A stretch of 64,000 bases of DNA, from positions 124,001 through 188,000 of IMG/VR virus record IMGVR_UViG_3300027770_000025. One strand, given 5' to 3'. Positions 12,668 through 48,242 of this stretch are shown one piece after another. The notes beneath the pieces are model-generated. The model was not told the origin of the DNA and ran no database searches. It worked only from the letters and a program-made list of their open reading frames with translations. Each line of letters opens with the position of its first letter. Within the stretch, counting starts at the first letter, position 1. Position numbers and translations under genes: made by a program.

Positions 12668-12673
12668 TTTTTT

Positions 12674-13129: not shown

Positions 13130-13158
13130 CGATGTGAATCTAATTCCTTTATTTTCCT

Positions 13159-13190: not shown

Positions 13191-13225
13191 TATTATTTGA
13201 TAATTTTATCGGATATATAAGTCAC

Positions 13226-14889: not shown

Positions 14890-14891
14890 GA

Positions 14892-17907: not shown

Positions 17908-18635
17908 AATTTTTTATTTTGGTAATCTATAACTGAATAACCTACTGGCTCATGCACAATAGGAGCTGAGGTAGCAAATATAGGAACTCTCGTATCGTAA
18001 TTCCAATAAAGCCAAATATCCCAAGCATGCCAACCGCTATTCTTTAATTTGTTCTGCATGCTTTCTTTTTCTAATTCGAATACCATATAACAGTGTGCAC
18101 ATAGAAAATGATCAATCTGTTTATACTTACCCATATAGATCGCTGTGTCTGAAACCGAAGCTTTTGATGCAGTTCCATAACTAACTGCTCCGAATGTAAA
18201 CATTGCACCAGATCTCTGAACACCAAATTCATATGCATCATAAATCTCCTTAACCATTTCTTCTGGGCTCACGTCATACACAACATCACTTTCGATAACC
18301 AGAATAGCATCGTAATTTCCGAAGTCTTCAATAGCAGATCTATGAGCAACGTAAGCTCCGTAGTGGCCATATGATAATACCGGTGGGACGTTGATAAATT
18401 CCTTAGATGTGTTTATGATCTCCGGCTGTGCGCAATTCTCTGATGGTAAATCAGTACGATTAACAACGGAATACATCTGGGAATAACAAGCAAAATTACT
18501 AGCTATTTTTTCAAATGCAGAAATTGACGCTTTCTGTTTATCCATAGCTGAATCCCATCTTTCGGAATGAATATCTTGAGGCTGATTAGGATCCAGTAGT
18601 AAATGACAGATTTTAATTCTTGGTCTTACGCTCAT
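17904..18635 (-). CDS. Probable glycosyltransferase (GT25-like)
   Basis: GHYGAYVAH, ILVIESD, AHCYMV; cluster context. Confidence 0.5.
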   Translation of the reverse strand: MSVRPRIKICHLLLDPNQPQDIHSERWDSAMDKQKASISAFEKIASNFACYSQMYSVVNRTDLPSENCAQPEIINTSKEFINVPPVLSYGHYGAYVAHRSAIEDFGNYDAILVIESDVVYDVSPEEMVKEIYDAYEFGVQRSGAMFTFGAVSYGTASKASVSDTAIYMGKYKQIDHFLCAHCYMVFELEKESMQNKLKNSGWHAWDIWLYWNYDTRVPIFATSAPIVHEPVGYSVIDYQNKKL

Positions 18636-19696
18636 TATTTCTTAAATCTATTTAATGAATTTGTCGAGATCATATTCCATTTAGCGTTTCCTATGAACTC
18701 TTGTAGAGTAGTTGCATTACTGTAACTCATTGCGGAGCTAAGATAGCTTTTGAAATTTTCTGTCCATCCAGATAAAGTGTATTCAACTGGTTGCATCCGG
18801 GTAACACCCTCACTTGTTTTTAAATCTGTCTTGCCCATAGCCTTCTGAGCCTCTTTGGTGCTCATTCCCCTGAACTTCTTAAACATCTTAGTTCCGTAGT
18901 TAAAAAGATTTCTAGTCTCGTCGGAATACTGATCTATCTTCTCTCCTGGCTCGGTCCAACCTTCACCCTTCGTATTAGCTAAATAGGTGTCGCCTGCGCT
19001 CTCTAAAGTCTTATTCAATATTGAACCAAGCATAACGTGATCTGCGCCTAAAGCGAGCGCTTTAATGATGTCTGCGTAACTTTTAAATCCTCCATCTGCA
19101 ACGATTTTTGCTGGTGTTTGTAATGTACAGCTAATTTCGTAGCATTCGTGTATAAGTGAAGCCATAGGATAGCCAATTCCAGTTTGTACTGTTGTTAGAC
19201 ACCCCCCGCCATTGCCTATACCTATTCTTACTAGATCTGCTCCTGCTTCGGAGAAAATCCTATATGTTTCTGGGTTGGCAACGTTACCAACCATTAAAAT
19301 CATGCTGCCACCATATAAAGATTTGGCTTGAAACGTTGCATCGAGTAAACCCTGCATGTGACCATTTGCAATGTCAATCAGAATATAATATTTTTCCGCA
19401 ACATCTACCTTTCCGTTATCTAAAAATATCTTCTTAAACTCATCCTTTCCAAATGATAAGAAGTTATTAAAATCACTATCTAAATTAACTCCGAACGATG
19501 GTGCCTTTCTGGGTCTCACCACATTTATTCCAGATTGCTGAAATAAAGAATAATTACGATCATCTATAACAGTGTCCATTGGTGCGGTGAATAATGGAAG
19601 ATACCCATTATCATAGAAAACATCAACCTGTTTTCTTGATTCAATCCTGCTAATCGCTGCCGGCTGAATTAATATGTCGTCAAAGTCAAATTTCAT
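18635..19696 (-). CDS. IMP dehydrogenase/GMP reductase family, no CBS domain
   Basis: FDDILIQP, APMDTV, DIANGH, GNVA, GIGNGGGCLT, ADGG, KALALGAD, FRGMS, SAMSY. Confidence 0.88.
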   Translation of the reverse strand: MKFDFDDILIQPAAISRIESRKQVDVFYDNGYLPLFTAPMDTVIDDRNYSLFQQSGINVVRPRKAPSFGVNLDSDFNNFLSFGKDEFKKIFLDNGKVDVAEKYYILIDIANGHMQGLLDATFQAKSLYGGSMILMVGNVANPETYRIFSEAGADLVRIGIGNGGGCLTTVQTGIGYPMASLIHECYEISCTLQTPAKIVADGGFKSYADIIKALALGADHVMLGSILNKTLESAGDTYLANTKGEGWTEPGEKIDQYSDETRNLFNYGTKMFKKFRGMSTKEAQKAMGKTDLKTSEGVTRMQPVEYTLSGWTENFKSYLSSAMSYSNATTLQEFIGNAKWNMISTNSLNRFKK

Positions 19697-26757: not shown

Positions 26758-27759
26758 TTATTCTGTCTTTTTATCCTCTGTGCTAGCTGGTGTTTCTGTG
26801 CTAGTATCGGGAGTTGGAGAGGAAGAAGTTGGCTGAGGAGTAGGTGCTGGCTGTTCTGGTTTACCTGGTGCTGGTTTACCTCCGGGTTTACCTGGTGCTG
26901 GTTTAGCTCCTGGTTTACCTGGTGCTGGTTTACCTGGTGCTGGTTTACCTGGTGCTGGTTTACCTGGTGCTGGTTTAGTTGATTTGTAGTTACCTTCTTT
27001 ATTTAGTATTTCACTAAAATCTTTATTCTGTTTCAAAATAGATTCTCTAGCTACCTTACGAACTAAATATAAGCTACCGAGTGTTTGTCCAACTTGTTTG
27101 GATAATAAAACAGATGGATCTGCTTTAACCGAAGCAATCAATTTCTGGAGTGAATTCACATAAATTGCAGAGATCGTCTTCATCTGTTGACTTGCTGCAA
27201 GTTCTTTTCTAAATTCTGCAGGATTATTTCCTGCTTTTTTCATAGAATCTGCTATTCCCTTACTTACTGATATTAATAGGCCGTTTACCTTGGGATCTAC
27301 TGATTCCTGACCCATTCCTTTAGAGATCTTACCTGTAATTGATGAGATAAAAGATTTTATCTTGCCCATTAAGTCAGAGCTGTCGTTCTTTCCCTCATTT
27401 AACCCTTCGTCCAATCCTTCTTCTAAACAGGCTTGATCTAGGAAATCCCATTCGGGTAGATTTTCTTTTTCGTGAACTCTTGATTCTACGAATTTTGTGA
27501 ATTTAATTATGTTGTTCATATTTTCTGGTTTTTTTTCTTCGCTTAATTTTTGATTTGGCTGCATAACAGGAGAGTTCTGAAGCCATTTAGAAATACCTAA
27601 AGTTTTAGCTGCCGCTCTCTCGTGATATGCCTTATGAGGAAATGCTCCACATGTTGGGCATTCTTTTTCACTGTCTTCTATGCTTTTTCCGCAACCAGAA
27701 CAAACGTCCTGTCTTTTTCTTTCTGTTACGAATTGGGTTATTTGTTTTAGTTGCTTCAT
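26758..27759 (-). CDS. Probable internal head protein with Zn ribbon and PAPGK repeats
   Basis: MKQLKQITQFVTE; CSGC..CPTC; second motif MNNIIKFTKFVE; Pro-rich tail. Confidence 0.75.
   Translation of the reverse strand: MKQLKQITQFVTERKRQDVCSGCGKSIEDSEKECPTCGAFPHKAYHERAAAKTLGISKWLQNSPVMQPNQKLSEEKKPENMNNIIKFTKFVESRVHEKENLPEWDFLDQACLEEGLDEGLNEGKNDSSDLMGKIKSFISSITGKISKGMGQESVDPKVNGLLISVSKGIADSMKKAGNNPAEFRKELAASQQMKTISAIYVNSLQKLIASVKADPSVLLSKQVGQTLGSLYLVRKVARESILKQNKDFSEILNKEGNYKSTKPAPGKPAPGKPAPGKPAPGKPGAKPAPGKPGGKPAPGKPEQPAPTPQPTSSSPTPDTSTETPASTEDKKTE
26857..26976 (-). repeat. 15-bp coding tandem repeat (TGGTTTACCTGGTGC on +, PAPGK)
   Basis: Four perfect units at 26911-26970 plus degenerate copies. 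Confidence 0.95.
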
Positions 27760-27760
27760 A

Positions 27761-29005
27761 TTATACGTATCTTAATGCTTTAGAAACATTGATCAATCTC
27801 TTAGTTAATCCGTCGATGTCTTCGATCTTAGTTGCCATATCAACATACTGATTCATCTTATCGTTTCCTGAGATTAGACTCTTAATTGACATTGATCCCT
27901 CCTTTAGGAGATATTTAATTAGAATAGCTTTAGCGTTCTCGTGTACTGCTGTTGTGTCGTGTTCTTTATCGAAGAAAACAGTTTGACTCACATCCGCTGA
28001 TGCATCATGAAAATAGTTTGCAAGAAGGCCGTTAAGTTCTTCCATTGTTTCTTTATCTTCTGCCGATGCTCTCCATCCAGGTATTACTAATTTCTCGTCT
28101 AGAGATTTACCCTTTGCTCTTTTAAAAGTTCTTTTTGCAATAGCAATAAAAATGGCGTTAAACATCTCGACGTCTTCCAACCTACATCTTAGAGTGTTTT
28201 CACCTGTTCTAAAATTAACGGAGTTGATAGGCATTCTTTGTGTGTTGGTAACTGTCCAAGTTTCGTAATCTGTTTTGGTAATCATTTGACCGTGTGTATC
28301 ACCACCTACTAGATCTTTAATTAGATCTCCATAAAGTTGTTTAGCTCTTTCTAAAGCTCTCAGGTAGAAATAGTACTTAACTTTACCGCCTTTAGAAATG
28401 TCTCTCACTAAACTAACCCTTCCGCTGCTAGAATATCTGACACTCTTACCAACGAAGTCAAGTTCAACCAACCTTTGCATTGTTGCAAGCTGAAGTAACT
28501 CGTCGTTATTAGGATGAGCTAATTGATCTCCTCCCATCATAGGTTTTAGCCTTTCCCTAATCTGATCAAGGGTAAGTTCTTCACCTGCAGGATACATCTC
28601 ATCAAAATCAACTTTCTCGTTAACGTCTCTCTTGCTTATAAGTGAAGCTGGAATTCCGTTTTTAACAATTCTAAGCCAGATGTGTCTGAAAAGTTCTTGT
28701 GGGGTATCAAAACTAGCAAATCCATATGTTTCTAATCCAGGTTTACTTGAGTAGTGTTCGCAACAGTAATTACCATCATCATCAACAAACATGGAGGTTT
28801 TAGGCATTGAGCTTCCTCTGATTTCTAATCTAATCTTCTGATCATCTATTCTCTGAACGGTTACATTTAACCCTCTTTTAAGGTCTCTCGCAGAAGGTAG
28901 ATTGCTGTCAAAAGAATCTATTAATTCTCTTCCTGGAGGATTGAGCCAGTTTTTACTCCAATAAGCTTCCCCGATAAACTCGGAGTAATTTGAAACTTTT
29001 TCCAT
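27761..29005 (-). CDS. Hypothetical, probable internal head protein
   Basis: MEKVSNYSEFIGE; 414-aa ORF. Confidence 0.75.
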   Translation of the reverse strand: MEKVSNYSEFIGEAYWSKNWLNPPGRELIDSFDSNLPSARDLKRGLNVTVQRIDDQKIRLEIRGSSMPKTSMFVDDDGNYCCEHYSSKPGLETYGFASFDTPQELFRHIWLRIVKNGIPASLISKRDVNEKVDFDEMYPAGEELTLDQIRERLKPMMGGDQLAHPNNDELLQLATMQRLVELDFVGKSVRYSSSGRVSLVRDISKGGKVKYYFYLRALERAKQLYGDLIKDLVGGDTHGQMITKTDYETWTVTNTQRMPINSVNFRTGENTLRCRLEDVEMFNAIFIAIAKRTFKRAKGKSLDEKLVIPGWRASAEDKETMEELNGLLANYFHDASADVSQTVFFDKEHDTTAVHENAKAILIKYLLKEGSMSIKSLISGNDKMNQYVDMATKIEDIDGLTKRLINVSKALRYV

Positions 29006-29006
29006 A

Positions 29007-30548
29007 TTATAATTTAGATTTAATTCTTTTAGCTATATTTTGCTCTTCTCTAACCACGTTTTTCATGCTTTCGACTTGGGTAGGCTTTAATGGAAGATTT
29101 CCTTCTGCATTAAGATCCAAAACGTACTTAATCTCTTCGATACCCTTTTCTGTTGCCTTTAATATATCTTCGATATCAGCTTTAGTGTAATCATCACCAA
29201 TAAGTCTATTGAATACATTTAGAGTTGCCTCACTGAAGATACCATATTGTTTAAACTCGTTCATGAAGTCACTTTTCTTAAGACCTTTAACATCATAGAT
29301 GATCTGAGCAACCAATCCTGAGATCTTCTCCCAGTCTTCCTGTGGCATAGCACCAGCTAAGAAACCTTTTGATGTTGCTATAAGGGATTCAATAATGTTT
29401 CTAATAGTAAGACCTGTTCCGTCTCGGTAATATCTTTCAAGAGCGATCTTGATATCACACTCCATTTTGAACTTTGACATAACAGTATCAACCAGATCCT
29501 TAGGGTAATCGAGTCCTTCTAAAACATCTTTTAGCGTTTTGAACGTGTTATTGTTTTTATCCCTTAGTCTATTGTTAGGTCTTGTGGCATCAGTGTGGAT
29601 TGATCCGTCTTGGTTAACCGTGACACCAATTAAGCTGTGTATATCAGTAACGGGAACGTTTGAGTTAATGATATTGATCTGTACCCTTCCCCCGTTATAG
29701 GACCAGAATGTTGAATCTGTTCTAATACACCAGTTGGTATCTGCACATATTGCTCTTTGGGCTTCCGGTGTTCTTGCGGATTCCACGATGTAACCGTCCT
29801 TAGCATAAAGAATACCTGCCATTGGACCTAGATCCTTAAGCTTCTTAAGTAATCCGGACTCGTCTTGGCTCCAGCCTTCAATAAATTCTAATGCGTCCTT
29901 AATAATATCAGCGAAAGCCACCTTTTCATCTCTGTATTCAGGATAAGTTCTGGTGTCTTCGTATTTCTTTAGTCCTTTGGTGAATTCTTTCCAAGCAATT
30001 TTTCCGTCTTTATCTTTTAGTTGTTCTAATTGGTTGGAGATTTCGGTAAGGTCATCAATTTGTTTGTCCGTTGCTTTTGCGAAAACCTTTCTCATTTTAC
30101 CTGTTAACTCACCGTAAAACTTTTTTAGTTTTCTTTTTCTCTCGATATTTCTAAGGTCGTCACCCAAAACTTCATATCCTGGACGGATGTCGTCTTCCGT
30201 AGGTTCAACTTTAGCGTAATCATTAATGTTCATAGACAAATCCTGTCCTAGGGTTTGTTTATATTTCATTAGATTATCGAAAATCTCCTTTAGTTCCTCC
30301 ATGTGAGCTTTCTGATCGAATCTGAATTTTACGAACATTGGGGTGTAGCCAGGGAATTTTTCTGTTAAATCCTTAACCTCTTTAAATTTTGGATCTGCTA
30401 GGATCTTTTTCTTTGTTTCTTCACCGATTTCAGATGTTTTTATCTTCTTTTCTAAAGCATATCTCTTTAAAAGATAGTCCTTAGCAGCTTGGACATTTTC
30501 TAACAGAGCTTGTTTCTCTGAAAATGTTGGGAAACTATATTTCATCAT
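29007..30548 (-). CDS. Large hypothetical protein (possible PcfJ-like WC motif)
   Basis: Probable start MMKYSFPTFSE at 30548; ICADTNWCIRTDSTFWSY. Confidence 0.7.
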   Translation of the reverse strand: MMKYSFPTFSEKQALLENVQAAKDYLLKRYALEKKIKTSEIGEETKKKILADPKFKEVKDLTEKFPGYTPMFVKFRFDQKAHMEELKEIFDNLMKYKQTLGQDLSMNINDYAKVEPTEDDIRPGYEVLGDDLRNIERKRKLKKFYGELTGKMRKVFAKATDKQIDDLTEISNQLEQLKDKDGKIAWKEFTKGLKKYEDTRTYPEYRDEKVAFADIIKDALEFIEGWSQDESGLLKKLKDLGPMAGILYAKDGYIVESARTPEAQRAICADTNWCIRTDSTFWSYNGGRVQINIINSNVPVTDIHSLIGVTVNQDGSIHTDATRPNNRLRDKNNNTFKTLKDVLEGLDYPKDLVDTVMSKFKMECDIKIALERYYRDGTGLTIRNIIESLIATSKGFLAGAMPQEDWEKISGLVAQIIYDVKGLKKSDFMNEFKQYGIFSEATLNVFNRLIGDDYTKADIEDILKATEKGIEEIKYVLDLNAEGNLPLKPTQVESMKNVVREEQNIAKRIKSKL

Positions 30549-30596
30549 AAGGTATAATTTTGTATTGTGATATATATTCAAATTAAAAAACCAACT

Positions 30597-30863
30597 ATGA
30601 AAGTTTTCACCAAAATAGAAGAGTTTTTGGCAACTAAGCCCCAAACGGCACCTGGTCAGCCAACTACAAGGCCTGGAACTACCCCAGGAACGAGACCTAC
30701 TCCTTCAAGACCAAGTCCAATCAGAAGGGATAAACCAGCTGTTGACCCAGCTCCTAAAGCTAAAGCATCTGCCGTTGTTGATAGATTTATGGTGGAACTT
30801 AAAAAGGCTAAGGCACCTATAAAATTTAACATCTCAAAATTAAAAGACAGATATGAATCTTAA
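30597..30863 (+). CDS. Pro/Thr-rich small protein, probable head-associated
   Basis: MKVFTKIEEF at 30597; GATATATA at 30569-30576. Confidence 0.7.
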   Translation: MKVFTKIEEFLATKPQTAPGQPTTRPGTTPGTRPTPSRPSPIRRDKPAVDPAPKAKASAVVDRFMVELKKAKAPIKFNISKLKDRYES

Positions 30864-32271
30864 ATCATTTACACAGTTAGTAGACGAAGCCTCATTAAAG
30901 GATAATCCAGGAATACCTGGCGAAGGCGGAAAAGAAGGGGATTACCTTGCAAAAGTTGAAGGTAGAGCCAAAGAAAGAATTGATGCTCTCCAAAGAAGAC
31001 ATGGAGCAGATATCCCTAGATTCATGTCACTTGTTTCTAGGACAAAACAAATCCAATCAGGAAAAGAGAAAGAGCTAGAAAAGCTTGCAGAGGACTCAAT
31101 CAGATTATATTACGGTTCTATTCTAGAGGAGGTCACGCTAAACATTAAGTTTGAGAAGGACGATGAGATTAAGAAGTCTATGGAGAAGGTTCAAGCAGAA
31201 CCCCCTGAAATGCCACAACTTAAAGAGCTTAAGGATGCTAATATCATTTCAGAAATCCAAAAAAGAAAAATAGCAAACAACATCACCCAAGGGGAAGCTA
31301 AGAACACTAAGCTAATACTAAATCTACCTGAGGTTAGAGACGGTTTAATTAGAATACTAGGACAAGAGCAAGGTACAGAGTATAAAGATCTACTTAATAA
31401 GATCACAGAAATCGCTGGATTCTTTGATTGGAAAATCCCAATGGAAGTTCAGTTGGAGATGTGGACAAGAGATAAATCAGGATTTAGTGGATCAGTAACC
31501 GTTGAATGGAACACTGACAAAGAGGAAGATTCAGAAGAACTTGCACAGGAGATTCTTGGTGAATTAGAAGACGACACAGAAATACCAGAAGAGACTGAAG
31601 AACTATTCTCACAAACACAGCCTACTATTAATGCTTTAGGTACTGACTTTGCCATGTTACTTCATGAGGCAGTTAAAGGTATCTATGAACTTATAGCTGC
31701 AGTGGGTATTCCTGATGATGAAGAAACAGCAGAAACAGTTATAATGAACACCGATTCATTAGCAGACGAGATCGAAGATCTTAGATATGGACCAGAAATT
31801 GCAGCAGATCTCAGAGATCTTGTTAACTCGTTTCCCGAATTTGAGAGCATTCCTAATTTAAGAGAACATGTTTTCGGTAAGATGATGGCAATGGAAGCTA
31901 AGGATTTCCTTGAGCTTATGTACATGATACTTATTGAGGATCCTAAGGCTAAGCCAATTGTACAGGAGTTCATTGACGAGATTGCAGAAGAGATTGGTAA
32001 ATACGAGCTTGGTCAGGCAGGAATAGATAATGACGACGACTACGAGCCAGCGGAAACACCAGGTAGAGCACCAGCACAGGCTGGACAGGAAGAGGTTGAT
32101 TACTCTGAACTTACAAGAAGAGAGATTGAGAGATTGATCGATGCTGCTCTAGATGTTAAAGACTTTGATAGGGTTAGGGATCTTTCTAAGTACCTAAAAG
32201 AGTCAAAACAACAAGAAATCTCAGAAAAACTTCACAAAGAAATGGGTTACCCATCAAATTTAGAAGAATGA
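30853..32271 (+). CDS. Acidic helical hypothetical protein, probable virion protein
   Basis: MNLKSFTQLVDE; 472-aa ORF. Confidence 0.75.
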   Translation: MNLKSFTQLVDEASLKDNPGIPGEGGKEGDYLAKVEGRAKERIDALQRRHGADIPRFMSLVSRTKQIQSGKEKELEKLAEDSIRLYYGSILEEVTLNIKFEKDDEIKKSMEKVQAEPPEMPQLKELKDANIISEIQKRKIANNITQGEAKNTKLILNLPEVRDGLIRILGQEQGTEYKDLLNKITEIAGFFDWKIPMEVQLEMWTRDKSGFSGSVTVEWNTDKEEDSEELAQEILGELEDDTEIPEETEELFSQTQPTINALGTDFAMLLHEAVKGIYELIAAVGIPDDEETAETVIMNTDSLADEIEDLRYGPEIAADLRDLVNSFPEFESIPNLREHVFGKMMAMEAKDFLELMYMILIEDPKAKPIVQEFIDEIAEEIGKYELGQAGIDNDDDYEPAETPGRAPAQAGQEEVDYSELTRREIERLIDAALDVKDFDRVRDLSKYLKESKQQEISEKLHKEMGYPSNLEE

Positions 32272-32369
32272 GATAGATATATAGTAAAACTAATAAATAA
32301 TATGAAAAATAATATGAAAAATAACAAACCAGTATTTGAGAGCTTTAATGAATTCATTAAGTTCATTTA
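32271..32369 (+). repeat. Copy 1 of late promoter + targeting-peptide head (copy 2 at 34475-34568)
   Basis: 30-nt identity (32271-32300/34475-34504) and 44-nt identity (32326-32369/34525-34568). Confidence 0.95.
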
Positions 32370-33675
32370 TGAAGCAGATCAATTAAACGAAGGAGAAACA
32401 ACAGGTTACGCAGGTAAGTTATCTGCTATTCTATCTGGAGGTATGAAACTCCAAGGACAGAATAAGACTTTTACCGAAACTCTAGTTACTGAATATCTTA
32501 ACAAATATTACAATGCTAGCGTGCCAGGAACTAAGGAGATGGCAGATACGCTAATACAAGTCTTAAGTGATGCTTTTGATACGCTTAACAATAAAGTAAT
32601 AAGAACTACACCTGGTGTTGTCTCAAAAACAATACTACCAACAACTTACGAATATTTAACCGACGGTGTGGTTAAAGCGGAAGGACATTGTAATCTAGAG
32701 ACTACTTTTGAATACACCGGCTATGATGATAAGGGAAATTTACAAGGAGGTCTAGAAGGTAGTTACACAATTGGAGATAGAGTAGATGAAACACAAACGT
32801 TACCCTTGTCATATCTTTTAGCAGCTGTTAATGCTCATAATTTTAACGCATTTGCAGAACTGGTTGACATGGCAGCGGGATATAAAAAAGGGGATACTAT
32901 AGTAAATTATGGGGACAAAGCCGATCTGAAGGGGTATCTAAAATGGTCTACTGGAACAAGTAATGAGAATAAAAGATTTTTCCAAATGGATTCCGAATCT
33001 CTTGGTGGTAATATCATTCAATTTACTGATTACAAACCTAAAGGAACCGCACCTGGTTGGGGATGGCAATTCCCTATTTACGTAGCTTCTTTTATTACCG
33101 CAGGTGGGGGTAGTCTTGTAGATGCTTCAACGTATGACGAAGTTATTCAGCCAGCAGGAAATTCGGTAGAGGTTTCTGAAAAGGAATATAATGCTCCACC
33201 CGAAGCTAAATTCTTTGACGCAAACGAGGTAACAATCTCTGAAGATGGTAAAGCATCATTAAATGCTATACTTTCCTCATTTAACTCTATTGATAAAATT
33301 TTAGTTAACGGTGGTGCTTCAAGCTCAAAAACTGATAGAGAAGGAGGAAACGAACAACTTGCTAAAGATAGACAAGCAGCTGGTATTACAGAATTAAATG
33401 CTCTTAAAGAATCAGGAGTACTTCAACTTAAAGATACAGTAATTGAAGCGGGAACAGCTAAAGTTCAGGATGCAGCAGAAAAAAGTGATCCTACAAAACA
33501 GCAAGTTTCTTTTATTATTTCAGGTAAGATTAAATCAACTAAAGTTGTAGAAACCAAACCAGTTACAATTCAAAGGGTTGAGACGATAAAAGGAGATGCT
33601 GTTCAATTTACTGAATACGTATTTAACATTATGGTTAATGCAGAGCCTAACACTAAAACTCTAACAGAAGCTTAA
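32302..33675 (+). CDS. Probable virion protein with degenerate OmpA-like C-terminal domain (cassette 1)
   Basis: KPVFESFNEFIKFIYE; FDANEVTISEDGKASLNAIL..ILVNGGAS..GNEQLAKDR. Confidence 0.65.
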   Translation: MKNNMKNNKPVFESFNEFIKFIYEADQLNEGETTGYAGKLSAILSGGMKLQGQNKTFTETLVTEYLNKYYNASVPGTKEMADTLIQVLSDAFDTLNNKVIRTTPGVVSKTILPTTYEYLTDGVVKAEGHCNLETTFEYTGYDDKGNLQGGLEGSYTIGDRVDETQTLPLSYLLAAVNAHNFNAFAELVDMAAGYKKGDTIVNYGDKADLKGYLKWSTGTSNENKRFFQMDSESLGGNIIQFTDYKPKGTAPGWGWQFPIYVASFITAGGGSLVDASTYDEVIQPAGNSVEVSEKEYNAPPEAKFFDANEVTISEDGKASLNAILSSFNSIDKILVNGGASSSKTDREGGNEQLAKDRQAAGITELNALKESGVLQLKDTVIEAGTAKVQDAAEKSDPTKQQVSFIISGKIKSTKVVETKPVTIQRVETIKGDAVQFTEYVFNIMVNAEPNTKTLTEA

Positions 33676-33689
33676 ATATTTTTATAACA

Positions 33690-33727
33690 CACAAAAAAAG
33701 CCTAGAATATTCTAGGCTTTTTTTGTG
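33690..33727. terminator. Bidirectional terminator, perfect 38-bp palindrome
   Basis: CACAAAAAAAGCCTAGAAT-ATTCTAGGCTTTTTTTGTG between convergent genes. Confidence 0.85.
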
Positions 33728-33740
33728 ATCTTTATTTTAT

Positions 33741-34343
33741 TTATTCAACGATTACAGTGAATCCTATACTTTCTAATTCTTTATCTAATTTTTCAACGTC
33801 TACAATTACTGAGTTACGGTCGAAGTTTCTGTCAATTACCAAAGCATATAGGATAATCCCATTTTTATTAATAGCCAAAGCATCAAATTCTACATATCCC
33901 AATTTGCCTAATCCCTCTGGTGTTACGTCGATTGCTAATCTTTTTACTAGTCTTTCTTTATATTCAGTAACGATTCTTTTTGCTTCTTCCTTTTCATTTG
34001 CTGTAATACTAGCTTTACCTTTATCTCTAGCAGTAAAACATGATGGGTTTCCAGCTACTTCTTGTGCTTCCTTTAATACCACATATGTTTTTTTTCCGTT
34101 AGGTAAATCAACCAATTTGTTTGTACCGTCCGAGTTTTTTTCATATACGTTTTCTGCTCTCAGTACATAATCTAGAGTTGTGTCCAAATTTAATCCTGGA
34201 AATTGAATGTACATCTCATCAACCAATGCTTTCTGAAATAGGCTGACATCAAATCCTTTTGCTGTGTCTGCTGGCTGAGCTTTTACCTGTGCAGTAGTTA
34301 CCGATGCGATAACGATTGCTGCGATTGCGATTAACTTTTTCAT
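33741..34343 (-). CDS. Secreted/periplasmic protein (cassette 1 partner)
   Basis: Signal peptide MKKLIAIAAIVIASVTTAQVKA; early promoter upstream. Confidence 0.8.
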   Translation of the reverse strand: MKKLIAIAAIVIASVTTAQVKAQPADTAKGFDVSLFQKALVDEMYIQFPGLNLDTTLDYVLRAENVYEKNSDGTNKLVDLPNGKKTYVVLKEAQEVAGNPSCFTARDKGKASITANEKEEAKRIVTEYKERLVKRLAIDVTPEGLGKLGYVEFDALAINKNGIILYALVIDRNFDRNSVIVDVEKLDKELESIGFTVIVE

Positions 34344-34434
34344 AACTTTTTTTATTTTATATTTTAATTACAATACAAATATAAGACCCATTCACGGGAT
34401 AAAAAAATTTTTATGGGGATTTATTAATATTTTT
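34269..34434 (-). repeat. Copy 1 of 166-bp early promoter + signal-peptide block (copy 2 at 36187-36352)
   Basis: Manual alignment shows 5 mismatches and no gaps; includes the early promoter at 34376-34407. Confidence 0.95.
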
Positions 34435-34474
34435 TAGCAGGCTAGATCTATTATACATCAAATTTGGAATAATT

Positions 34475-34568
34475 AGATAGATATATAGTAAAACTAATAA
34501 ATAACAAATAACATGACAAACAATAAACCAGTATTTGAGAGCTTTAATGAATTCATTAAGTTCATTTA
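34475..34568 (+). repeat. Copy 2 of late promoter + targeting-peptide head
   Basis: See 32271-32369. Confidence 0.95.
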
Positions 34569-35751
34569 CAGCGATGCAATTTACGAATCGGTAAAAATCG
34601 AAAATCTTTCCGACTTGCAAAGAACCCTAGGAAGCTTGGGTATGGATAAAGTAGGAAAAAATGCACTGACCGAGATTGAAAGCTTAGCAGAGCAATCTGG
34701 GGCTATATTTTCTGCAGCGGATCTAAGCCAAATTGGGGTAGTCCTAGGAAAGTTAACAATCCCTGACGTAATCTCTATTACAGATGTAAATGTAGATGTA
34801 GAAAAATTCTACTACGACAATTTAATGGGCGGAGCGGTTAAAACACAAAAGGGTGATAAAGTAGGTCTTGCCCAATTCTTAACCCAAGCAAATAAGGAGA
34901 ATTTAAAACCTTTGAGTGGAAAGATCCCAAATATAAACCTAAAGAAGAAGAAGTTTGATTTAGACGAGAATGGAAAATTTGTACCAGGATCAGGTTTAAT
35001 TGGCCAATATTTACCGGTTCAGATAGAGGGTACACTAGATCTGAAGAAATGGAAATTTGATGACCCTGTTAAGAATTCTGTGATTGCTTTACCAGATTAT
35101 GATCCTTCGGGAACAAGTATTAGTTCCAGCGAACCAGTATCTAAGGAAACTCGAGCATATATGTACGGCGAAATACATGTTGCGTATGTGCTTTATCATC
35201 CAACCTTTGTAGGTAATAATGGTCAGCCATACACATCTAAAAAGGTGGAAACATACGTTCGTCCAGTACCTACAGTTACGGAGAAATTAAACCCTATCGT
35301 TGTTCAAGAAGAGCTTCCGCTTTTCGTAGTAAATACTGCAAATCTAACGGAAGAAGGAAAAATTGCAATCATGCAAGCACTATCAAACGTAACAACAGCT
35401 AAATCTATTTCAATCAGAGGCGGTGCTTCTCAAGAAGGAACTCCGGAAAGAAATAAGGAACTTTGTAAACTACGATCTGAAGCAGTGGCTGAATTTCTTA
35501 AACCTACTTTCCCTGATGCTGCTATCACTGCAGAAGCAGAAGGTGAGATACAACCTAAAACACCAGATACAGACGAGAAAACAAGAAAAACTTTCAGAAA
35601 GATAATTATGGACGTTGATGGTACAACATTGGTTAAACAGCCAGGAACAAAGGATGAAACTATTACAACAATTAACACCGTTAGCAAGAGAGCACAAAAG
35701 GTTACTATTGCAGCAACTATAATTACTATAACCGCTAAGTTTAATGAATAA
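34513..35751 (+). CDS. Probable virion protein with OmpA-like C-terminal domain (cassette 2)
   Basis: FVVNTANLTEEGK..ISIRGGASQEGTPERNKELCKLRSEAVAEFL..GEIQP matches the OmpA_C pattern. Confidence 0.75.
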   Translation: MTNNKPVFESFNEFIKFIYSDAIYESVKIENLSDLQRTLGSLGMDKVGKNALTEIESLAEQSGAIFSAADLSQIGVVLGKLTIPDVISITDVNVDVEKFYYDNLMGGAVKTQKGDKVGLAQFLTQANKENLKPLSGKIPNINLKKKKFDLDENGKFVPGSGLIGQYLPVQIEGTLDLKKWKFDDPVKNSVIALPDYDPSGTSISSSEPVSKETRAYMYGEIHVAYVLYHPTFVGNNGQPYTSKKVETYVRPVPTVTEKLNPIVVQEELPLFVVNTANLTEEGKIAIMQALSNVTTAKSISIRGGASQEGTPERNKELCKLRSEAVAEFLKPTFPDAAITAEAEGEIQPKTPDTDEKTRKTFRKIIMDVDGTTLVKQPGTKDETITTINTVSKRAQKVTIAATIITITAKFNE

Positions 35752-35764
35752 GTATAATATCAAA

Positions 35765-35803
35765 ACAAAAAAAGATCAAAGTTAGCTTTGATCTTTTTTT
35801 TGT
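35765..35803. terminator. Bidirectional terminator
   Basis: A7-GATCAAAG/CTTTGATC-T8 between convergent genes. Confidence 0.85.
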
Positions 35804-35817
35804 GGTCTTTGATTTTA

Positions 35818-36261
35818 TTAATACCCGCTCATTTCTTTCTTAATGCTTTCCACTGTTGTTCTAACCTGATAATCCTGAATTAAGATGAAGTATTTAGCTC
35901 CTTCATTTTCGATAACGGTGAAGCTATATAGATCATAGTCATAATCTGAATTTACCTCGCTATTAATGTCTCTAACAAATTGATTGTATACTTTTTCGGC
36001 ATTATCCTTATACTCAAGCGGAAATTCAGCGGGGAATGCAACCACTTGGAATGCCAAAGGAATTTGTCCATTAAAGATTGGCTCCCCATCTTTAGTAATA
36101 CCTGATACCTGATATCTTTCAATCTTAGCGTACTCCGAATGCTGAGCTTTCATAAAGGTATCGATAGAGATACTAATACGTTCTGATGCTGGTTGAGCTT
36201 TTACCTGTGCAGTAGTTACCGATGCGATAACGATTGCTGCGATTGAGATTAACTTTTTCAT
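35818..36261 (-). CDS. Secreted/periplasmic protein (cassette 2 partner)
   Basis: Signal peptide MKKLISIAAIVIASVTTAQVKA; mature part unlike the 33741 protein by eye. Confidence 0.8.
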   Translation of the reverse strand: MKKLISIAAIVIASVTTAQVKAQPASERISISIDTFMKAQHSEYAKIERYQVSGITKDGEPIFNGQIPLAFQVVAFPAEFPLEYKDNAEKVYNQFVRDINSEVNSDYDYDLYSFTVIENEGAKYFILIQDYQVRTTVESIKKEMSGY

Positions 36262-36352
36262 AACTTTTTTTATTTTATATTTTAATTACAATACAAATAT
36301 AAGACCCATTCACGAGATAAAAAAATTTTTCTGGGTATTTATTAATATTTTT
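36187..36352 (-). repeat. Copy 2 of early promoter + signal-peptide block
   Basis: See 34269-34434; promoter at 36294-36325. Confidence 0.95.
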
Positions 36353-36366: not shown

Positions 36367-36537
36367 TTACATCCTAGCAATTATATAGATCACTGTTCCT
36401 GCGATAGCAACTATCGCTGCAATAAAAGCTATGACTATTAATATACCACCTCCTTGTCGTTCTCTTTCATCCTCTTCCCAGCCTTCCCAATTCAAATTGG
36501 AATCTTTCGTATGATCTTCTATTTTTTTCTTTTTCAT
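36367..36537 (-). CDS. 56-aa membrane protein
   Basis: Not in ORF track. Hand translation MKKKKIEDHT...GILIVIAFIAAIVAIAGTVIYIIARM. Confidence 0.6.
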   Translation of the reverse strand: MKKKKIEDHTKDSNLNWEGWEEDERERQGGGILIVIAFIAAIVAIAGTVIYIIARM

Positions 36538-36952: not shown

Positions 36953-37240
36953 TTATTTAATTATAGGTTGGAACCAAGCTTCTTTCTGTATGTAAGGTTT
37001 ACTAATAGACATTGAATCAAACGAGAAGGACATTACCTCTGATTCTATAATAGTAAACTCTATCCCTTCTAGTACGTATCTGTCTATCTTCTTATGTGCT
37101 CTACTTTCTTTATTAGAGAAATAAGGACCGAAATTACCCATAGTCCCGTATAGACCTGCTTTAATAAGTGCTTCTTTAGCACGGCGAAAGTCTGTCGGAT
37201 CTTCTGTTAGACCGTTTTGATAAATCTTTGGCTGTCTCAT
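36953..37240 (-). CDS. Hypothetical protein
   Basis: Packed ORF. Confidence 0.65.
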   Translation of the reverse strand: MRQPKIYQNGLTEDPTDFRRAKEALIKAGLYGTMGNFGPYFSNKESRAHKKIDRYVLEGIEFTIIESEVMSFSFDSMSISKPYIQKEAWFQPIIK

Positions 37241-38046: not shown

Positions 38047-38649
38047 ATGGCTTATAAAAGAGAGCAAATCGAAAAAGCGGTAAAAGAAAAAGGATACGTT
38101 TGGTTTGAAGGAGCCAAAGATTTTGATGTTAATATTGTTGGTATTAGAAATAATGCTCCCGCGATAGCAGATAAGGTAACTAATGTATTTGATGATTACA
38201 TAACGCTATCTTTTAAAGAAGCTGGGGTATGGAAATTTTATGAGTGGAATATTACCACAGATCCTGGAACAAAAGCTGTTAAAGAGTTTCACAATCCAAA
38301 TGGGGTTGCAAGAGTAGTACCTGGGCAATATCGGGGAATGTGGGCCGTTGGTTTACATCAGGGTAAATACGAAGCTATGCGTCAGGTTAAACCAGTTAAG
38401 GTTTACCGTGACAAGAATAAGGATATGACTTTTAATGAAACTGTTATCCAAGAGGGTATTTTTGGAATCAATGGACATAGATCTAATCCAACTACTGAGT
38501 CCGCTTATGTAGAAAATTGGTCGGAAGGATGTCAAGTATTCAAGAGGGTAAAGGATTTTAATGAATTTATGGGACTTATTAATAAAGCAAAGGCGATCCA
38601 CGGTAATCAATTTACCTACACACTAATAGAGTCAAATGACTTAATATAA
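38047..38649 (+). CDS. L,D-transpeptidase (YkuD)-like catalytic domain protein
   Basis: GINGHRS...WSEGCQV fits the H-x(n)-S-x-G-C motif; directly upstream of the endolysin. Confidence 0.6.
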   Translation: MAYKREQIEKAVKEKGYVWFEGAKDFDVNIVGIRNNAPAIADKVTNVFDDYITLSFKEAGVWKFYEWNITTDPGTKAVKEFHNPNGVARVVPGQYRGMWAVGLHQGKYEAMRQVKPVKVYRDKNKDMTFNETVIQEGIFGINGHRSNPTTESAYVENWSEGCQVFKRVKDFNEFMGLINKAKAIHGNQFTYTLIESNDLI

Positions 38650-38664
38650 AAAAAACCAAAAAAT

Positions 38665-39486
38665 ATGTTATTAAAAAACGGGTCTAAAGGGGAAGACGTT
38701 AAAAAACTCCAAGCAAAATTAGGTGCTACCGCAGACGGAAATTTTGGTCCAGGTACGGAAGCAAAAGTAAAAGCGTGGCAATCAGCTAATGGATTAGTAG
38801 CAGACGGCGTTGTAGGAGATGGAACTTGGGCTAAGATGTTTGGCTCTGCTCCAGTAGCAGCAGCTCCAGCAGCTATTCCAGCTTCATCTTTTAAATTGGA
38901 AGCTCTGAGAGGTCACATTCCTGATGCAGTTATTGCGCAAATCCCAGATACAGCAGCTAAATTTGGTATTACGAATACCCTAAGACTAGCTCACTTCTTA
39001 GCTCAGTGCGGTCACGAATCTGGTGGATTCAAAGCAGTTAATGAAAATCTTAACTACTCAGCTGATGGTCTTAAAAAGATCTTCCCTAAATACTTCCCTG
39101 GAAATTTAAACGAGTCTTATGCAAGACAGCCGGAGAAAATTGCTAATAAGGTGTACTCATCTAGAATGGGCAACGGAGACGAAGCATCTGGTGATGGATA
39201 TCGATATAAAGGTGCGGGTTTTATCCAATTAACAGGCAAAAGCAACTATGCTGCTTTTGATAAATTTGTTGATGATGACATATTAGCAAATCCCAATTTA
39301 GTTGCAACCAAATATCCATTAGCCTCTGCAGCATTCTTTTTTAATTCAAATAAGCTTTGGTCTATATGTGATAAAGGAGCTGATGATGCTACAGTGACTG
39401 CGGTTACGAAGCGTGTAAACGGTGGCACAATCGGGCTAGCTGATAGAATTAAACACTTTAAGGAATACTATAATCTACTTAAATAA
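38665..39486 (+). CDS. Endolysin: PG-binding domain + GH19 lysozyme
   Basis: GEDVKKLQ..DGNFGPGT; LAHFLAQCGHESGGF, ENLNYS, GFIQLTGKSNY, TKRVNGG. Confidence 0.92.
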   Translation: MLLKNGSKGEDVKKLQAKLGATADGNFGPGTEAKVKAWQSANGLVADGVVGDGTWAKMFGSAPVAAAPAAIPASSFKLEALRGHIPDAVIAQIPDTAAKFGITNTLRLAHFLAQCGHESGGFKAVNENLNYSADGLKKIFPKYFPGNLNESYARQPEKIANKVYSSRMGNGDEASGDGYRYKGAGFIQLTGKSNYAAFDKFVDDDILANPNLVATKYPLASAAFFFNSNKLWSICDKGADDATVTAVTKRVNGGTIGLADRIKHFKEYYNLLK

Positions 39487-39518
39487 GAATATATAAAGGG
39501 TAAAAATAAAAAAAATAT

Positions 39519-39860
39519 ATGAAAAACTTATTTTCTTCAATTAAAGAACACAGTAAAGGACTATGTTCCTGGGTAGCTGGCTTATTCAAAGATGAGTCTG
39601 GCCACCCATCATCCAAAAGATTTGTAGGCATAGTAGCTTCGCTTACTTTATGTATTACTATGTACCACAATAGCTATACTGCCGTGGACATTGCGCCAGC
39701 AGAATATCTTGTGAATGCTGTAGCACTTCTTGCATTTTCAACACTCGGACTTTCGTCTGTTGACAAATTTGTAAAGAGTAGAAAAGACATGCACATGGCT
39801 ACTAAAGCCAATGAAACCCCAGCAGAAACGACTGAAGAATCAACAGAAAACCCGTTATGA
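39519..39860 (+). CDS. Putative holin-like membrane protein (2 TM)
   Basis: SSKRF followed by two hydrophobic helices; follows the endolysin. Confidence 0.6.
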   Translation: MKNLFSSIKEHSKGLCSWVAGLFKDESGHPSSKRFVGIVASLTLCITMYHNSYTAVDIAPAEYLVNAVALLAFSTLGLSSVDKFVKSRKDMHMATKANETPAETTEESTENPL

Positions 39861-40162
39861 AAAAGTTTATTTTATTAGCAGCTTTTGCTTTAATCAGCAA
39901 TTTAGGAATCTCACAATGTTGTAAAGATTCTAAAAAAGTTAATCAACCTTGGGCATTAAGTACAAGTCTTGGCTATATCAACGTATCAAATACTACAATT
40001 GGACCAAGATACCAATCAAATGCATGGGGATCTCTTAACATTAGCTATAGTACAAATAGGTGGACTTTCGGTGCTTGGGCAGGAGCTAACTATTGGGTAA
40101 ATGGTAAACAGCCCGATCTTAGATTAGGAGTCACTACTACATACACAATAAAAAAATGGTAA
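39857..40162 (+). CDS. Small secreted beta-rich protein
   Basis: Signal peptide; alternating aromatic strands ending in W. Confidence 0.6.
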   Translation: MKKFILLAAFALISNLGISQCCKDSKKVNQPWALSTSLGYINVSNTTIGPRYQSNAWGSLNISYSTNRWTFGAWAGANYWVNGKQPDLRLGVTTTYTIKKW

Positions 40163-40167
40163 TATAA

Positions 40168-40524
40168 ATGAAAGATATAGGCATAACACTTAGTTTCTTA
40201 ATAAGTGGTCTTTTCGGTGCTATTCTAATGGTATCGAACAATGCACAGGGAAACTTAAAATCTGCTATGCTGTCAATCATCGGCGGAATGGCATCAGCTA
40301 ATTACCTAACCCCTGTTATGATCGAGATGCTGGGTCTTAAGGAAGCTAAATTACAGAATGGTTTAGCTTTTATTGTCGGATTTTTAGGGTTAAAATTAGT
40401 TGAGGTTCTTAGCAATAAATTTCTTAAGCAAGTTTCTCCTTCTGAGCAGGTTGTAAAAGAGCCAGTTAGAAGAAAGCCTGCGGCTAAGAAACCAGCAGTG
40501 AAGAAACCTGTGACAAAGAAATAG
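40168..40524 (+). CDS. Putative holin (3 TM, basic tail)
   Basis: Three hydrophobic segments; K/P-rich C-terminus. Confidence 0.65.
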   Translation: MKDIGITLSFLISGLFGAILMVSNNAQGNLKSAMLSIIGGMASANYLTPVMIEMLGLKEAKLQNGLAFIVGFLGLKLVEVLSNKFLKQVSPSEQVVKEPVRRKPAAKKPAVKKPVTKK

Positions 40525-46811: not shown

Positions 46812-48242
46812 TTATCGTTTATATTTCCTTGCTAATTCCTGTGCATGATTCAAGTCCCTAACACCAAATTTCTGGGATTGCTGCAAATACCCATCAGCAA
46901 ATGATCTAGGCTTATTTAAAGCCATTGAATTCCATCCATTATAATTTGTACTGTATTTCCAAATCTGGTCTGTAGTTGCTATAGATCCATTAGGTCTTTC
47001 CGTGTATAAATAACCACCTACATTACCTCCTGTTCGATCTGCTCCATGAGCGCAGTGTACTAATGTGTTACCACTTTTAATAATTTCATTTACCTTGTCC
47101 TGATCTCTAGTAGATGAAAGCTTATAGAATTTACATCCTAGCTGTTTACATAATGCTTCCTCTTCTGCGATTGAAACAGATTGATCTTTTCTTTGATGTC
47201 TTCCATCCTTTCCATCCCCGTTAAATCGTATAACATTCTTTATTCCGTATTTAGGGTACATCTGTTTCATTACCTCGAGAGGAAATTGTGCACTTCTGTA
47301 ATTTGTTCCCTTTCCGTCAGGAATCAAATGAAAATTATACTCTCTAGAAATAGCTGCATCATCCTGTTCTGGATTAGTCCCCACCACAGCAGGAGTAAAT
47401 ATTATATTGTTATTAGGTATCGGAGATTGGTTATTAACTATCTGAGATGTATTATTGGCATCTGCGCCAGATTTCTTAGGAGCATTCTTAGACCTCATGT
47501 TTGGGTTTTCGCTATCCAATGTGTCAATGGAAATCTGATAAGCTGGATTAAAATCTGCTCCAGTTAGCTCATACCATCTTGATTGACTATCTTTTTTAGC
47601 TAACCAATGATCGCCTTCTACCTTATATTTATAAGGATCCTTCGGTCTAGAAATAATTTGACTCGCTGTAGAGTTTCCTTTACTTAGATCTGTTGGTGGA
47701 ATGTATCCAGATTGGTTTGTTACCAACCCGTCAATTTCCTTTGCTATAGTATCATATACAGGTAGATTAACATGGGGGTTTGTTACTTTCCCGATTGGTG
47801 GTTCAATAACGGTAACGCCTTCACCTTTAAATCTGTCATAGTATTGCTTAACCTTATCAGTGGTTACTGATACATTTCCGCCCCAACCCCATGATCCCTG
47901 AACAACAGACAATTTTGCCTGCGGAAAAACTCTTCTTAATTCAGAAACTAGACCTTTGATGTCGTCATTGGGGCTAAATCCCCCATTCGTTCCGATGTTT
48001 ATTACAACATCTTTAACTTTAGTGTCAACTGGATGCTTAGAAACAGCCCCATTCAGCCATTTAACGCCCATTCCACTTTTCCATAAGTTTTCTTCCGATC
48101 CAGTAGTTCCTAACATTGTAAGGGTCTTGGATCTCCTGAATATGTTTGGAGTACAAGAATCACCTATTACGATGCTTGTCCCATCACTTTTAGACTCGTT
48201 TAAACTTATAAAAGATTTAAAATCATGTATTCTATTTTTCAT
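46812..48242 (-). CDS. Multidomain probable virion protein: SGNH-like + linker module + Cys-based (CX5R) phosphatase
   Basis: MKNRIHDFKSFISLNE; IGDS and IGTNG blocks; VHCAHGADRTG; GATATATA 4 nt upstream. Confidence 0.75.
   Translation of the reverse strand: MKNRIHDFKSFISLNESKSDGTSIVIGDSCTPNIFRRSKTLTMLGTTGSEENLWKSGMGVKWLNGAVSKHPVDTKVKDVVINIGTNGGFSPNDDIKGLVSELRRVFPQAKLSVVQGSWGWGGNVSVTTDKVKQYYDRFKGEGVTVIEPPIGKVTNPHVNLPVYDTIAKEIDGLVTNQSGYIPPTDLSKGNSTASQIISRPKDPYKYKVEGDHWLAKKDSQSRWYELTGADFNPAYQISIDTLDSENPNMRSKNAPKKSGADANNTSQIVNNQSPIPNNNIIFTPAVVGTNPEQDDAAISREYNFHLIPDGKGTNYRSAQFPLEVMKQMYPKYGIKNVIRFNGDGKDGRHQRKDQSVSIAEEEALCKQLGCKFYKLSSTRDQDKVNEIIKSGNTLVHCAHGADRTGGNVGGYLYTERPNGSIATTDQIWKYSTNYNGWNSMALNKPRSFADGYLQQSQKFGVRDLNHAQELARKYKR

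Follow-up and report, generated by a model that had tools for sequence, protein, structure and literature searches.

A conserved, iterated and exchangeable two-gene cassette in a clade of uncultured giant Bacteroidota phages

Results

Two convergent cassettes of one layout

We analyzed 64,000 nucleotides (nt) of phage DNA, here called the window, which form part of the 348,582-bp IMG/VR contig UViG_3300027770_000025. At 32247-36352 the window carries two units of the same layout, in which a large gene on the plus strand (A1 or A2) and a small gene on the minus strand (B1 or B2) converge on a perfect bidirectional hairpin. Each unit is composed of a GATATATA motif, a shared N-terminal tag and an OmpA-like protein of 412-457 residues, opposite a signal-peptide protein of 147-200 residues with a Bacteroidota-type promoter. 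This repeated layout had been described in a first-pass annotation made from the sequence alone, and all of its elements were recovered in our analysis. Comparison with relatives showed that the cassette is a conserved, iterated and recombinationally swappable two-gene unit in a clade of uncultured giant Bacteroidota phages. Its features are as follows.

32247-32369, plus strand: constant head block of large gene A1, which holds a candidate late promoter, a short leader and the tag codons, repeated at 34451-34568
32302-33675, plus strand: A1, OmpA-like large protein of 457 residues, with 90 homologs
33690-33727, both strands: bidirectional intrinsic terminator 1, with an A-run, a perfect GC-containing stem of 17-19 bp and a T-run
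33741-34343, minus strand: B1, 200 residues, Sec-type signal peptide and predicted alpha/beta mature domain, with 58 homologs
34269-34434, minus strand: head of small gene B1, with signal-peptide codons, AT-rich 5' untranslated region (5'UTR), -7 box and upstream T-run, repeated at 36187-36352
34451-34568, plus strand: head of large gene A2, with the candidate late-promoter motif and tag codons
34513-35751, plus strand: A2, 412 residues, tag and OmpA-like domain
35767-35800, both strands: bidirectional intrinsic terminator 2, a perfect hairpin with a 15-bp stem and A-run/T-run flanks
35818-36261, minus strand: B2, 147 residues, signal peptide and small mature domain
36187-36352, minus strand: head of small gene B2, with signal peptide, 5'UTR, -7 box and T-run

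Constant heads, promoters and terminators

DNA identity between the two units is confined to the heads of the genes, as had been noted before. The 5' ends of B1 and B2 (34269-34434 and 36187-36352) are 97% identical over 166 nt with 5 mismatches, the tag regions of A1 and A2 (32302-32369 and 34501-34568) are 91% identical over 68 nt, and their promoter regions (32247-32300 and 34451-34504) are 91% identical over 54 nt. An exact 35-nt tag-coding run was found at two sites only in the 64-kb window, both of them A heads, against a chance expectation of zero. Likewise, the 13-mer GATAGATATATAG lies at 32272-32284 (+) and 34476-34488 (+) and has no other exact match in the window. The promoter block of the B genes has no further copy anywhere in the window and is therefore not a general early-promoter repeat. 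The first-pass annotation had extended the identity of the small genes through the signal peptide; this holds in the window, but in other genomes the two small genes have only the promoter and 5'UTR in common, and the signal-peptide identity is particular to the window lineage.

The GATATATA motif occurs at 14 sites in the window. For 11 of them a start codon on the same strand follows within 60 nt, although such upstream space amounts to only 4.6% of positions. As GATATATA[AG] it stands 17-32 nt before the ATG in 17 of 17 large genes from ten genomes, and GATATATA also precedes the endolysin-like gene and other tagged genes in the window. The motif is thus a candidate phage late promoter, reminiscent of T4 TATAAATA. 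Further copies include those at 8584-8596 (-) and 62333-62345 (-), together with a palindromic copy between the divergent genes at 30548 and 30597.

Every small gene among the same 17 units has a T-run and the box TAnnTTTG upstream, the -7 box consensus of Bacteroidota as used in PMC6847099 and PMC9723704. In the window the box of B1 reads TATATTTG (34376-34383, minus strand), and that of B2 is found at 36294-36301; a TAnnTTTG box also lies upstream of the DnaQ-like exonuclease gene. The idea that large and small genes carry promoters of different classes was thus borne out. A hairpin separates A from B in all 17 units first examined, with fold energies of -16 to -30 kcal/mol. With an A-run on one side of its GC-containing stem and a T-run on the other, it reads as a hairpin plus U-tract on either strand, as befits an intrinsic terminator. 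A search of Rfam recognized no RNA element in the conserved 5'UTRs; at the hairpins its matches were terminator-like and all below threshold.

Pairing of the two genes in related phages

Homolog searches recovered 32 proteins for A2, 90 for A1, 58 for B1 and 7 representatives for B2, all of them metagenomic. DNA and protein searches of approximately 50,000 deposited phage genomes found no relatives, and an A2-family profile found no relatives of A in 185,579 bacterial and archaeal species, each represented by one genome. From the TAnnTTTG promoters, the AQ-rich ends of the signal peptides and a Por_Secre_tail protein of the type IX secretion system (T9SS) in one relative, we infer that the host belongs to the Bacteroidota.

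Among the ten related genomes, 17 of 17 large genes are followed by a hairpin and then by a convergent signal-peptide gene. A metagenome scan brought the total to 47 units (39 non-redundant), and the convergent partner was present in every one for which enough downstream sequence was available (47/47); the sole large gene lacking it is followed by only 257 nt of contig. This layout is kept although the large proteins have diverged to approximately 20-25% identity and the surrounding gene order differs. To classify the proteins, large bodies were clustered after removal of the tag and small mature parts after removal of the signal peptide. The resulting table of A types against B types is near one-to-one, with 21, 6, 4, 3, 2, 1, 1 and 1 units. 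In a mirror-tree comparison, pairwise A-A and B-B identities were correlated with r=0.89 (Mantel 0/5000). Co-occurrence and co-variation by type, both proposed earlier as tests of the pairing, were therefore found.

Exchange of whole cassettes between close relatives

Copy number and cassette content were found to vary between closely related genomes, which are designated here by L numbers. The DNA of L007 follows the window at 96% identity until position 32378, in the last tag codons, where it gives way to an unrelated-looking third type with a different partner. In L003 the first unit is missing: the alignment breaks off at 32369 and resumes in the second unit. L016 carries type III followed by type I where the window carries type I followed by type II. 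Backbone proteins of L008 and L009 are 82-89% identical, and their first cassettes differ in both genes together. For L013 and L014, the synonymous divergence (dS) of cassette 2 is 0.08-0.15 compared to 0.19-1.2 for the flanks and cassette 1 is only 26-31% identical, which indicates cassette exchange. Thus, A and B are lost, replaced or reordered jointly, and the DNA breakpoints fall where the tag ends.

In genomes with two units, the tags of both large genes are near-identical and group by genome rather than by type, and the promoter and 5'UTR of both small genes are likewise common within a genome. The constant heads are therefore population-wide junction sequences that bracket a payload of A body, terminator and B body. 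Homologous recombination at these heads would move the A and B bodies as one unit.

The large proteins are full-length homologs with an OmpA-like domain

The first-pass annotation had judged the payloads to be unalignable outside the OmpA-like region. By BLASTP this is correct, since outside the heads A1 and A2 align over only about 60 residues of that region, with 32% identity. Profile-profile comparison, on the other hand, showed that the two families are homologous over their full length (hhalign 99.7%, E 1.6e-25, approximately 373 columns, 20% identity), and all further A types match the same A1/A2 profiles. By these profiles A1 and A2 are full-length, anciently diverged paralogs and not swapped effector domains. 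The proposed polymorphic-toxin architecture consequently did not stand up, and no toxin or enzyme domain was found beyond the OmpA-like domain in Pfam, PHROGs, NCBIfam, PADLOC, PDB or BFVD.

In A1, the tag (approximately residues 9-30) leads into a middle part that is helical and rich in beta structure; an OmpA-like region, weakly recognized, follows at residues 304-397 (nt 33211-33492), and a beta segment forms the C-terminus. A2 has the tag at residues 5-25, a three-helix segment at 32-81, a beta-rich domain with a hypervariable stretch at approximately 190-250, and an OmpA-like domain at 262-365 (nt 35296-35607) that is followed by beta strands. The Pfam OmpA profile (PF00691) scores 31.8 bits with A2, above its cutoff of 27.2, and 16.8 bits with A1, below it; the A2 domain also gave a PDB profile match with E 2e-6. 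A predicted model of A2 has a mean predicted local distance difference test (pLDDT) score of 81, with a detached N-terminal helix and a tag of low pLDDT that stands apart from the fold. Foldseek aligned this model with 4erh, 3td5, 5nhx and 5m38 (E 6e-6 to 9e-4, target template-modeling scores 0.65-0.75). As modeled, residues 262-365 of A2 have an OmpA-like beta-alpha-beta-alpha-beta-beta fold that superposes on solved OmpA, Pal and MotB domains. OmpA domains hold the diaminopimelate of the peptide stem through a conserved Asp and a conserved Arg. The corresponding Arg of the A2 family, R321, is invariant in 27 sequences.

The OmpA-like domain was the sole match of the A2 model in PDB and BFVD, the N-terminal 230 residues having none. 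PHROGs returned two weak OmpA-type families for A2 and nothing else, and PADLOC returned no match for any of A1, B1, A2 and B2. The A proteins have no signal peptide and the B proteins have one. Both proteins point to the periplasm, which A could reach only from outside the cell.

The N-terminal tag resembles a capsid-targeting sequence

In T4, the first ten residues of internal protein III (IPIII), MKTYQEFIAE (bioRxiv 10.1101/2021.01.19.427310), direct proteins to the inside of the prohead. Within this capsid-targeting sequence, targeting depends on residues 4 and 7 and processing on residues 8 and 10, and the gp21 protease cleaves after L/I-x-E (PMC9026906). The A1 tag, F-I-K-F-I-Y-E|A, fits the T4 pattern of aromatic-x-x-aromatic-I/L/V-x-E, and the suspicion that it is a virion-type tag thereby gained support (PMC9026906). 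An [ILV]-x-E motif is invariant in both families, with E25 in the A2 family (I-Y-E25) and E30 in the A1 family (L-N-E30). Of 98 predicted N-termini in the window, 5 fit the strict T4-like pattern, compared to 0 of 559 interior windows, and 13 fit a relaxed pattern, compared to 4.1% of interior windows. Most genes that bear the pattern have GATATATA or follow a gene that has it. The tag pattern and the promoter motif together favor, without proving, packaging of A into the head and its cleavage there.

At least 13 other proteins in the window have a tag-like start (hydrophobic-x-F/Y-x-x-F/W, often followed by I/L/V-x-E), for example those of the genes at 1515, 1991, 2553, 7391, 7789, 9522, 13226, 23899, 27761, 29007, 30597, 30853, 46812 and 61892. 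By analogy with T4, such N-termini predict a large set of head cargo proteins. Two of these tagged genes with the late motif look like genes for envelope-active enzymes: that at 13226-14311 (+) encodes a glycerophosphodiester phosphodiesterase domain (Pfam E 1.8e-16), and that at 46812-48242 (-), with zero family matches, has a GDS motif near its N-terminus that is suggestive of an SGNH/GDSL hydrolase.

The small proteins and their stand-alone relatives in bacteria

BLASTP aligned B1 with B2 over the signal peptide and a few further residues only. B1 has a Sec-type signal peptide that is probably cleaved after VKA, without a lipobox Cys, and a Cys after the signal peptide is likewise absent from B2 and most other partners. 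A C-terminal motif of G-x-x-Y, a hydrophobic run and D is common to the small-protein types; in B2 the mature domain ends in its version G-x-K-Y-F-I-L-I-Q-D. The B types probably form one superfamily, as suggested by this motif and by an hhalign probability of 94% that is partly inflated by the signal peptide. The predicted model of B1 is of alpha/beta type (pLDDT 77). A Foldseek resemblance of this model to CAP/PR-1 proteins was non-significant (probability <0.7, E >0.02) and was not used.

Homologs of B also occur without A. One clade of them, with 51-54% identity to B1, was found on a Bacteroidota chromosome among dapF, htrA, an rpoD-like gene and a T9SS substrate gene, with no large gene nearby. 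One B1-family member, a 198-residue protein encoded at L055:10001-10597, is 3.7 kb from genes for an IetA-like AAA ATPase (PADLOC E 2.7e-28) and a Cas4-like DUF2779 protein, and others are found on L050, L052, L056 and L057. A contig from a Crocinitomicaceae metagenome-assembled genome carries two tandem partner genes and no large gene (L053:223-1587). One encodes 159 residues and is 85% identical in protein and approximately 90% in DNA, over the coding part only, to a phage partner; the other encodes 277 residues, with a type I domain fused to a domain that resembles other partner types. Both have the same contig-specific upstream sequence. Since such contigs are short, the assignment remains provisional. 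The occurrence of B without A in bacteria indicates that B is useful on its own.

Selection acts differently on the two partners

Between the window and L002, dS is approximately 0.12 both for A1 and A2 (0.12-0.13) and for the flanking genes. The ratio of nonsynonymous to synonymous divergence (dN/dS) is 0.74 for A1 and 0.63 for A2, compared to 0.12 for B1, 0.05 for B2 and 0.01-0.15 for nine flanking genes. Across six close comparisons the large genes have values of 0.50-0.99 (A1, 0.53-0.74) and most flanking genes 0.00-0.15; B1, like most partners, is at 0.05-0.13. Counts of nonsynonymous (N) and synonymous (S) changes in A differ from those of the flanks with an odds ratio of 6.2 (P=2e-23), and those in B are no different from the flanks. 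The changes in A2 concentrate at residues 209-248 (22 N/6 S) and 81-120, and the core of the OmpA-like domain at 289-328 has none (0/0). Import of divergent patches was rejected as the source of the high dN/dS between the window and L002, because dS of A equals that of the flanks; it may contribute between the window and L016, where dS is 0.31. Over long distances both partners are the most diverged genes of their neighborhood, with similar dN. The symmetric, short-term co-evolution implied by the first-pass annotation was not observed: A changes fast and its partners are conserved.

Discussion

The explanation that we favor, tentatively and with somewhat less than even confidence, is an exclusion pair resembling T4 Spackle and its target, in which an ejected, wall-binding A protein is neutralized by its cognate B protein, made early and secreted. 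A would be transcribed from the phage-specific GATATATA[AG] promoter, probably late in infection. Given its T4-like tag, it would most likely be packed into the prohead, cut there by the prohead protease, whose gene is not in the window, and ejected when a cell is infected. Once ejected, its OmpA-like domain would act on peptidoglycan in the periplasm, and its middle domain would form a rapidly diversifying surface. The host-sigma-type promoter TAnnTTTG suggests that B is probably expressed early. Insulated from A by the bidirectional terminator, B would be exported by Sec to the periplasm, where it would bind the cognate type of A and block the A protein of same-type secondary phages. Such binding would bring about superinfection exclusion and protection from lysis from without, and B could possibly also neutralize the A protein left by the primary phage. 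Orphan partner genes fit a protein that protects on its own.

This role of B against A is patterned on T4, where Spackle (gp61.3), an early periplasmic protein with a signal peptide, neutralizes the virion-delivered, peptidoglycan-directed gp5 lysozyme of superinfecting phages (PMC7677548). The two systems differ in that Spackle is a highly conserved, 75-residue helical bundle with a disulfide whose gene is unlinked to gene 5, whereas the B proteins are alpha/beta proteins of 120-175 residues, come in several types and are always encoded next to their presumed target, which has no lysozyme domain. Likeness of B1 to Spackle was not detected at the level of structure or family, the alpha/beta model having no significant PDB match and the protein no PHROG or Pfam match. 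The A genes recall the T-even internal proteins IPI, IPII and IPIII, which also carry a short conserved N-terminal propeptide on highly diverse late proteins, have only the targeting sequence in common and are encoded at hyperplastic loci that vary between close relatives with the head alone conserved (PMC9026906, PMC3012670). Even the spacing of the motif is the same (MKTYQEFIAE in T4, F-x-x-F-I/L/V-x-E here). There is no sequence homology between the two groups, however; the bodies of A form one homologous family with an OmpA-like, wall-binding type of domain, and A is always paired with a convergent gene for a secreted protein, which the T4 genes lack. With the OmpA_C, Pal, MotB and TagL proteins, A2 shares the fold and motif of residues 262-365, but its domain resides in a phage protein that has neither signal peptide nor membrane anchor.

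Several points weigh against the proposed exclusion pair. T4 internal proteins go to the cytoplasm and not to the periplasm. The canonical diaminopimelate-binding Asp is not conserved: when the A2 family is aligned to 5nhx and 6u83, a Ser takes its place, so that peptidoglycan binding is not assured. The fold of B1 matched nothing significantly in the PDB and gives no functional clue. Over the short term, A changes by 12-26%, yet its B partner stays 98.5% identical in amino acids. A symmetric arms race would be expected if B tracked the variable surface of A; a near-invariant B would instead have to bind a conserved part of A such as the OmpA-like domain. If B does bind A, the OmpA-like part is probably the site, and the hypervariable surface of A would answer to something else. 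Co-variation by type is equally predicted by tandem duplication and tight linkage without any interaction. Since these alone can give r=0.89, the stronger argument for pairing is that adjacency, orientation and terminator are kept in every unit. Finally, the bacterial homologs of B could equally mean that a host periplasmic protein was captured by the phages and has a host target.

A related but rather unlikely reading is lock-and-key recognition between phages in the periplasm, with A types as keys and B types as locks displayed by the infected cell. Secondary infection by kin of the same type would be detected or blocked, which would lead either to exclusion or to a delay of lysis like that signaled by T4 RI in lysis inhibition. 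Diversifying selection on A and swapping of cassettes would then allow escape from the locks of rivals, and the orphan and fused locks of bacteria would be captured genes that act against phages on their own.

We consider it doubtful that A and B form a receptor-masking pair like T5 pb5 and Llp, where the middle domain of A would bind a variable envelope component, early B would mask or modify the same component, and A and B types would co-vary through their match to the host target rather than to each other. Systems of the Llp and Cor type do resemble the cassette, because they place a small early envelope protein beside the gene for a virion entry protein and the two co-vary between related phages; T5 llp lies adjacent to and downstream of the gene for the receptor-binding protein (PMC9586334). 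A fast A and a conserved B would be expected if B bound a conserved host protein, and B homologs on Bacteroidota chromosomes are compatible with a host-derived protein that has a host partner. Llp, however, is a lipoprotein of the outer membrane, and its binding partner is the host receptor FhuA and not a phage protein, whereas B has no lipobox and is not a lipoprotein. The tag of A is head-targeting-like, and we found no tail or recognizable receptor-binding features and no similarity to tail proteins. Moreover, the divergence of B over long distances matches that of A (26-35% identity), which would be odd for a protein that binds a conserved host protein.

Nor is it likely that the genes lack functional coupling altogether, with B an independent, early, moron-like periplasmic factor in host takeover or defense and the pairing a product of duplication and linkage. 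As stated above, this history predicts matching types and a high mirror-tree correlation, and it accommodates the uncoupled short-term rates of A and B and the presence of B without A in bacteria. It does not readily explain why adjacency, convergence and terminator are retained in 47 of 47 units whose surroundings and A proteins differ so widely, why units of A plus B were replaced together at least three times between close relatives, or why both genes are the fastest-diverging of their neighborhood over long distances.

Quite improbable, in our judgment, is a role in lysis, in which A would be a late cytoplasmic rather than a virion protein that is released or acts at lysis, for example by tethering or remodeling peptidoglycan or debris, and B would modulate the timing of lysis or guard progeny from binding to wall fragments. 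A lysis cluster does lie 2 kb downstream, and its endolysin-like gene has the same promoter motif. Yet the tag matches a capsid-targeting pattern common to many non-lysis proteins, dN/dS values near 1 are unusual for lysis proteins, and the cassette of L008 and L009 lies beside the Dda gene and not beside lysis genes. Least probable of all is the polymorphic effector-immunity system of the first-pass annotation, a toxin A with constant head and swapped payloads from which a cognate B would protect the infected cell: identical heads on divergent bodies, a small cognate gene alongside, the orphan B array in a metagenome-assembled contig, so like orphan immunity arrays, and the precedent of MuF polymorphic toxins borne by temperate phages, with their head-morphogenesis N-terminus on a presumably injected protein followed by a small cognate gene (PMC5576092), all recall such systems, but the C-terminal toxin domains of MuF toxins are unrelated and swapped and their immunity gene is co-directional, whereas A is homologous throughout and bears no toxin or enzyme domain in any library scanned, its partner is secreted and convergent with a promoter of its own rather than co-transcribed downstream, and A has no signal peptide, so that newly made A never meets the periplasm of its producer.

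We found no described system and no cultured relative that matches the cassette. Its novelty lies in the joining of two known principles, the marking of diverse cargo with a capsid-targeting tag and the countering of a virion protein by a periplasmic exclusion factor, in an obligate, iterated and swappable unit. If the proposed exclusion pair is correct, the cassette would be the first case in which entry proteins of several types are genetically hard-wired to their exclusion factors, a possible new and type-specific way for phages to shut out rivals, and a natural system in which to study phage exclusion or sensing and the diversification of such specificity. The T4 capsid-targeting principle would extend to giant Bacteroidota phages, with at least 13 cargo proteins predicted in the window, and the stand-alone partners on chromosomes could represent a new class of small periplasmic anti-phage proteins. 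Whether or not the two proteins bind, the cassette is unusual in its strict conservation, its recombination at the heads and a dN/dS near 1 on one partner only.

Other features of the window

Genes in the neighborhood of the cassettes encode RnlA-like and Rnl2-like RNA ligases, a Dda-like helicase, thymidylate synthase, a DnaQ-like exonuclease and lysis proteins. The block at 26758-32271, directly beside the cassettes, contains genes for proteins of 333, 414 and 513 residues on the minus strand and for an 88-residue proline-rich and a 472-residue, very acidic protein on the plus strand. None of these proteins matched a family, each begins with a tag-like N-terminus, and the block is syntenic in L002, L003, L007 and L017; its products may be head core or scaffold-like proteins. 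Directly after cassette 2, the gene at 36367-36537 (-) encodes a protein of 56 residues, acidic at its N-terminus and ending in a transmembrane helix; this protein is conserved in L002, L003 and L017. The 95-residue product of 36953-37240 (-) is 67% identical to its counterpart in L016, compared to 99.6-100% for the genes on either side, and by this comparison it belongs to another locally replaced or fast-evolving gene.

The probable lysis cluster, 2 kb downstream of the cassettes, spans 38047-40524. It comprises a phrog_3000/endolysin-like gene at 38047, a gene with PG_binding_1 and GH19 domains at 38665 and, from 39519 onward, several genes for small membrane or signal-peptide proteins. Two further clusters, at 10170-19696 and 50042-51730, contain sugar-nucleotide epimerase/dehydratase-like genes, a dehydrogenase gene and a gene for a Nol-like carbamoyltransferase, which suggests phage-encoded modification of glycans or nucleotide sugars. 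A tRNA-Lys(UUU) gene lies at 58451-58522.

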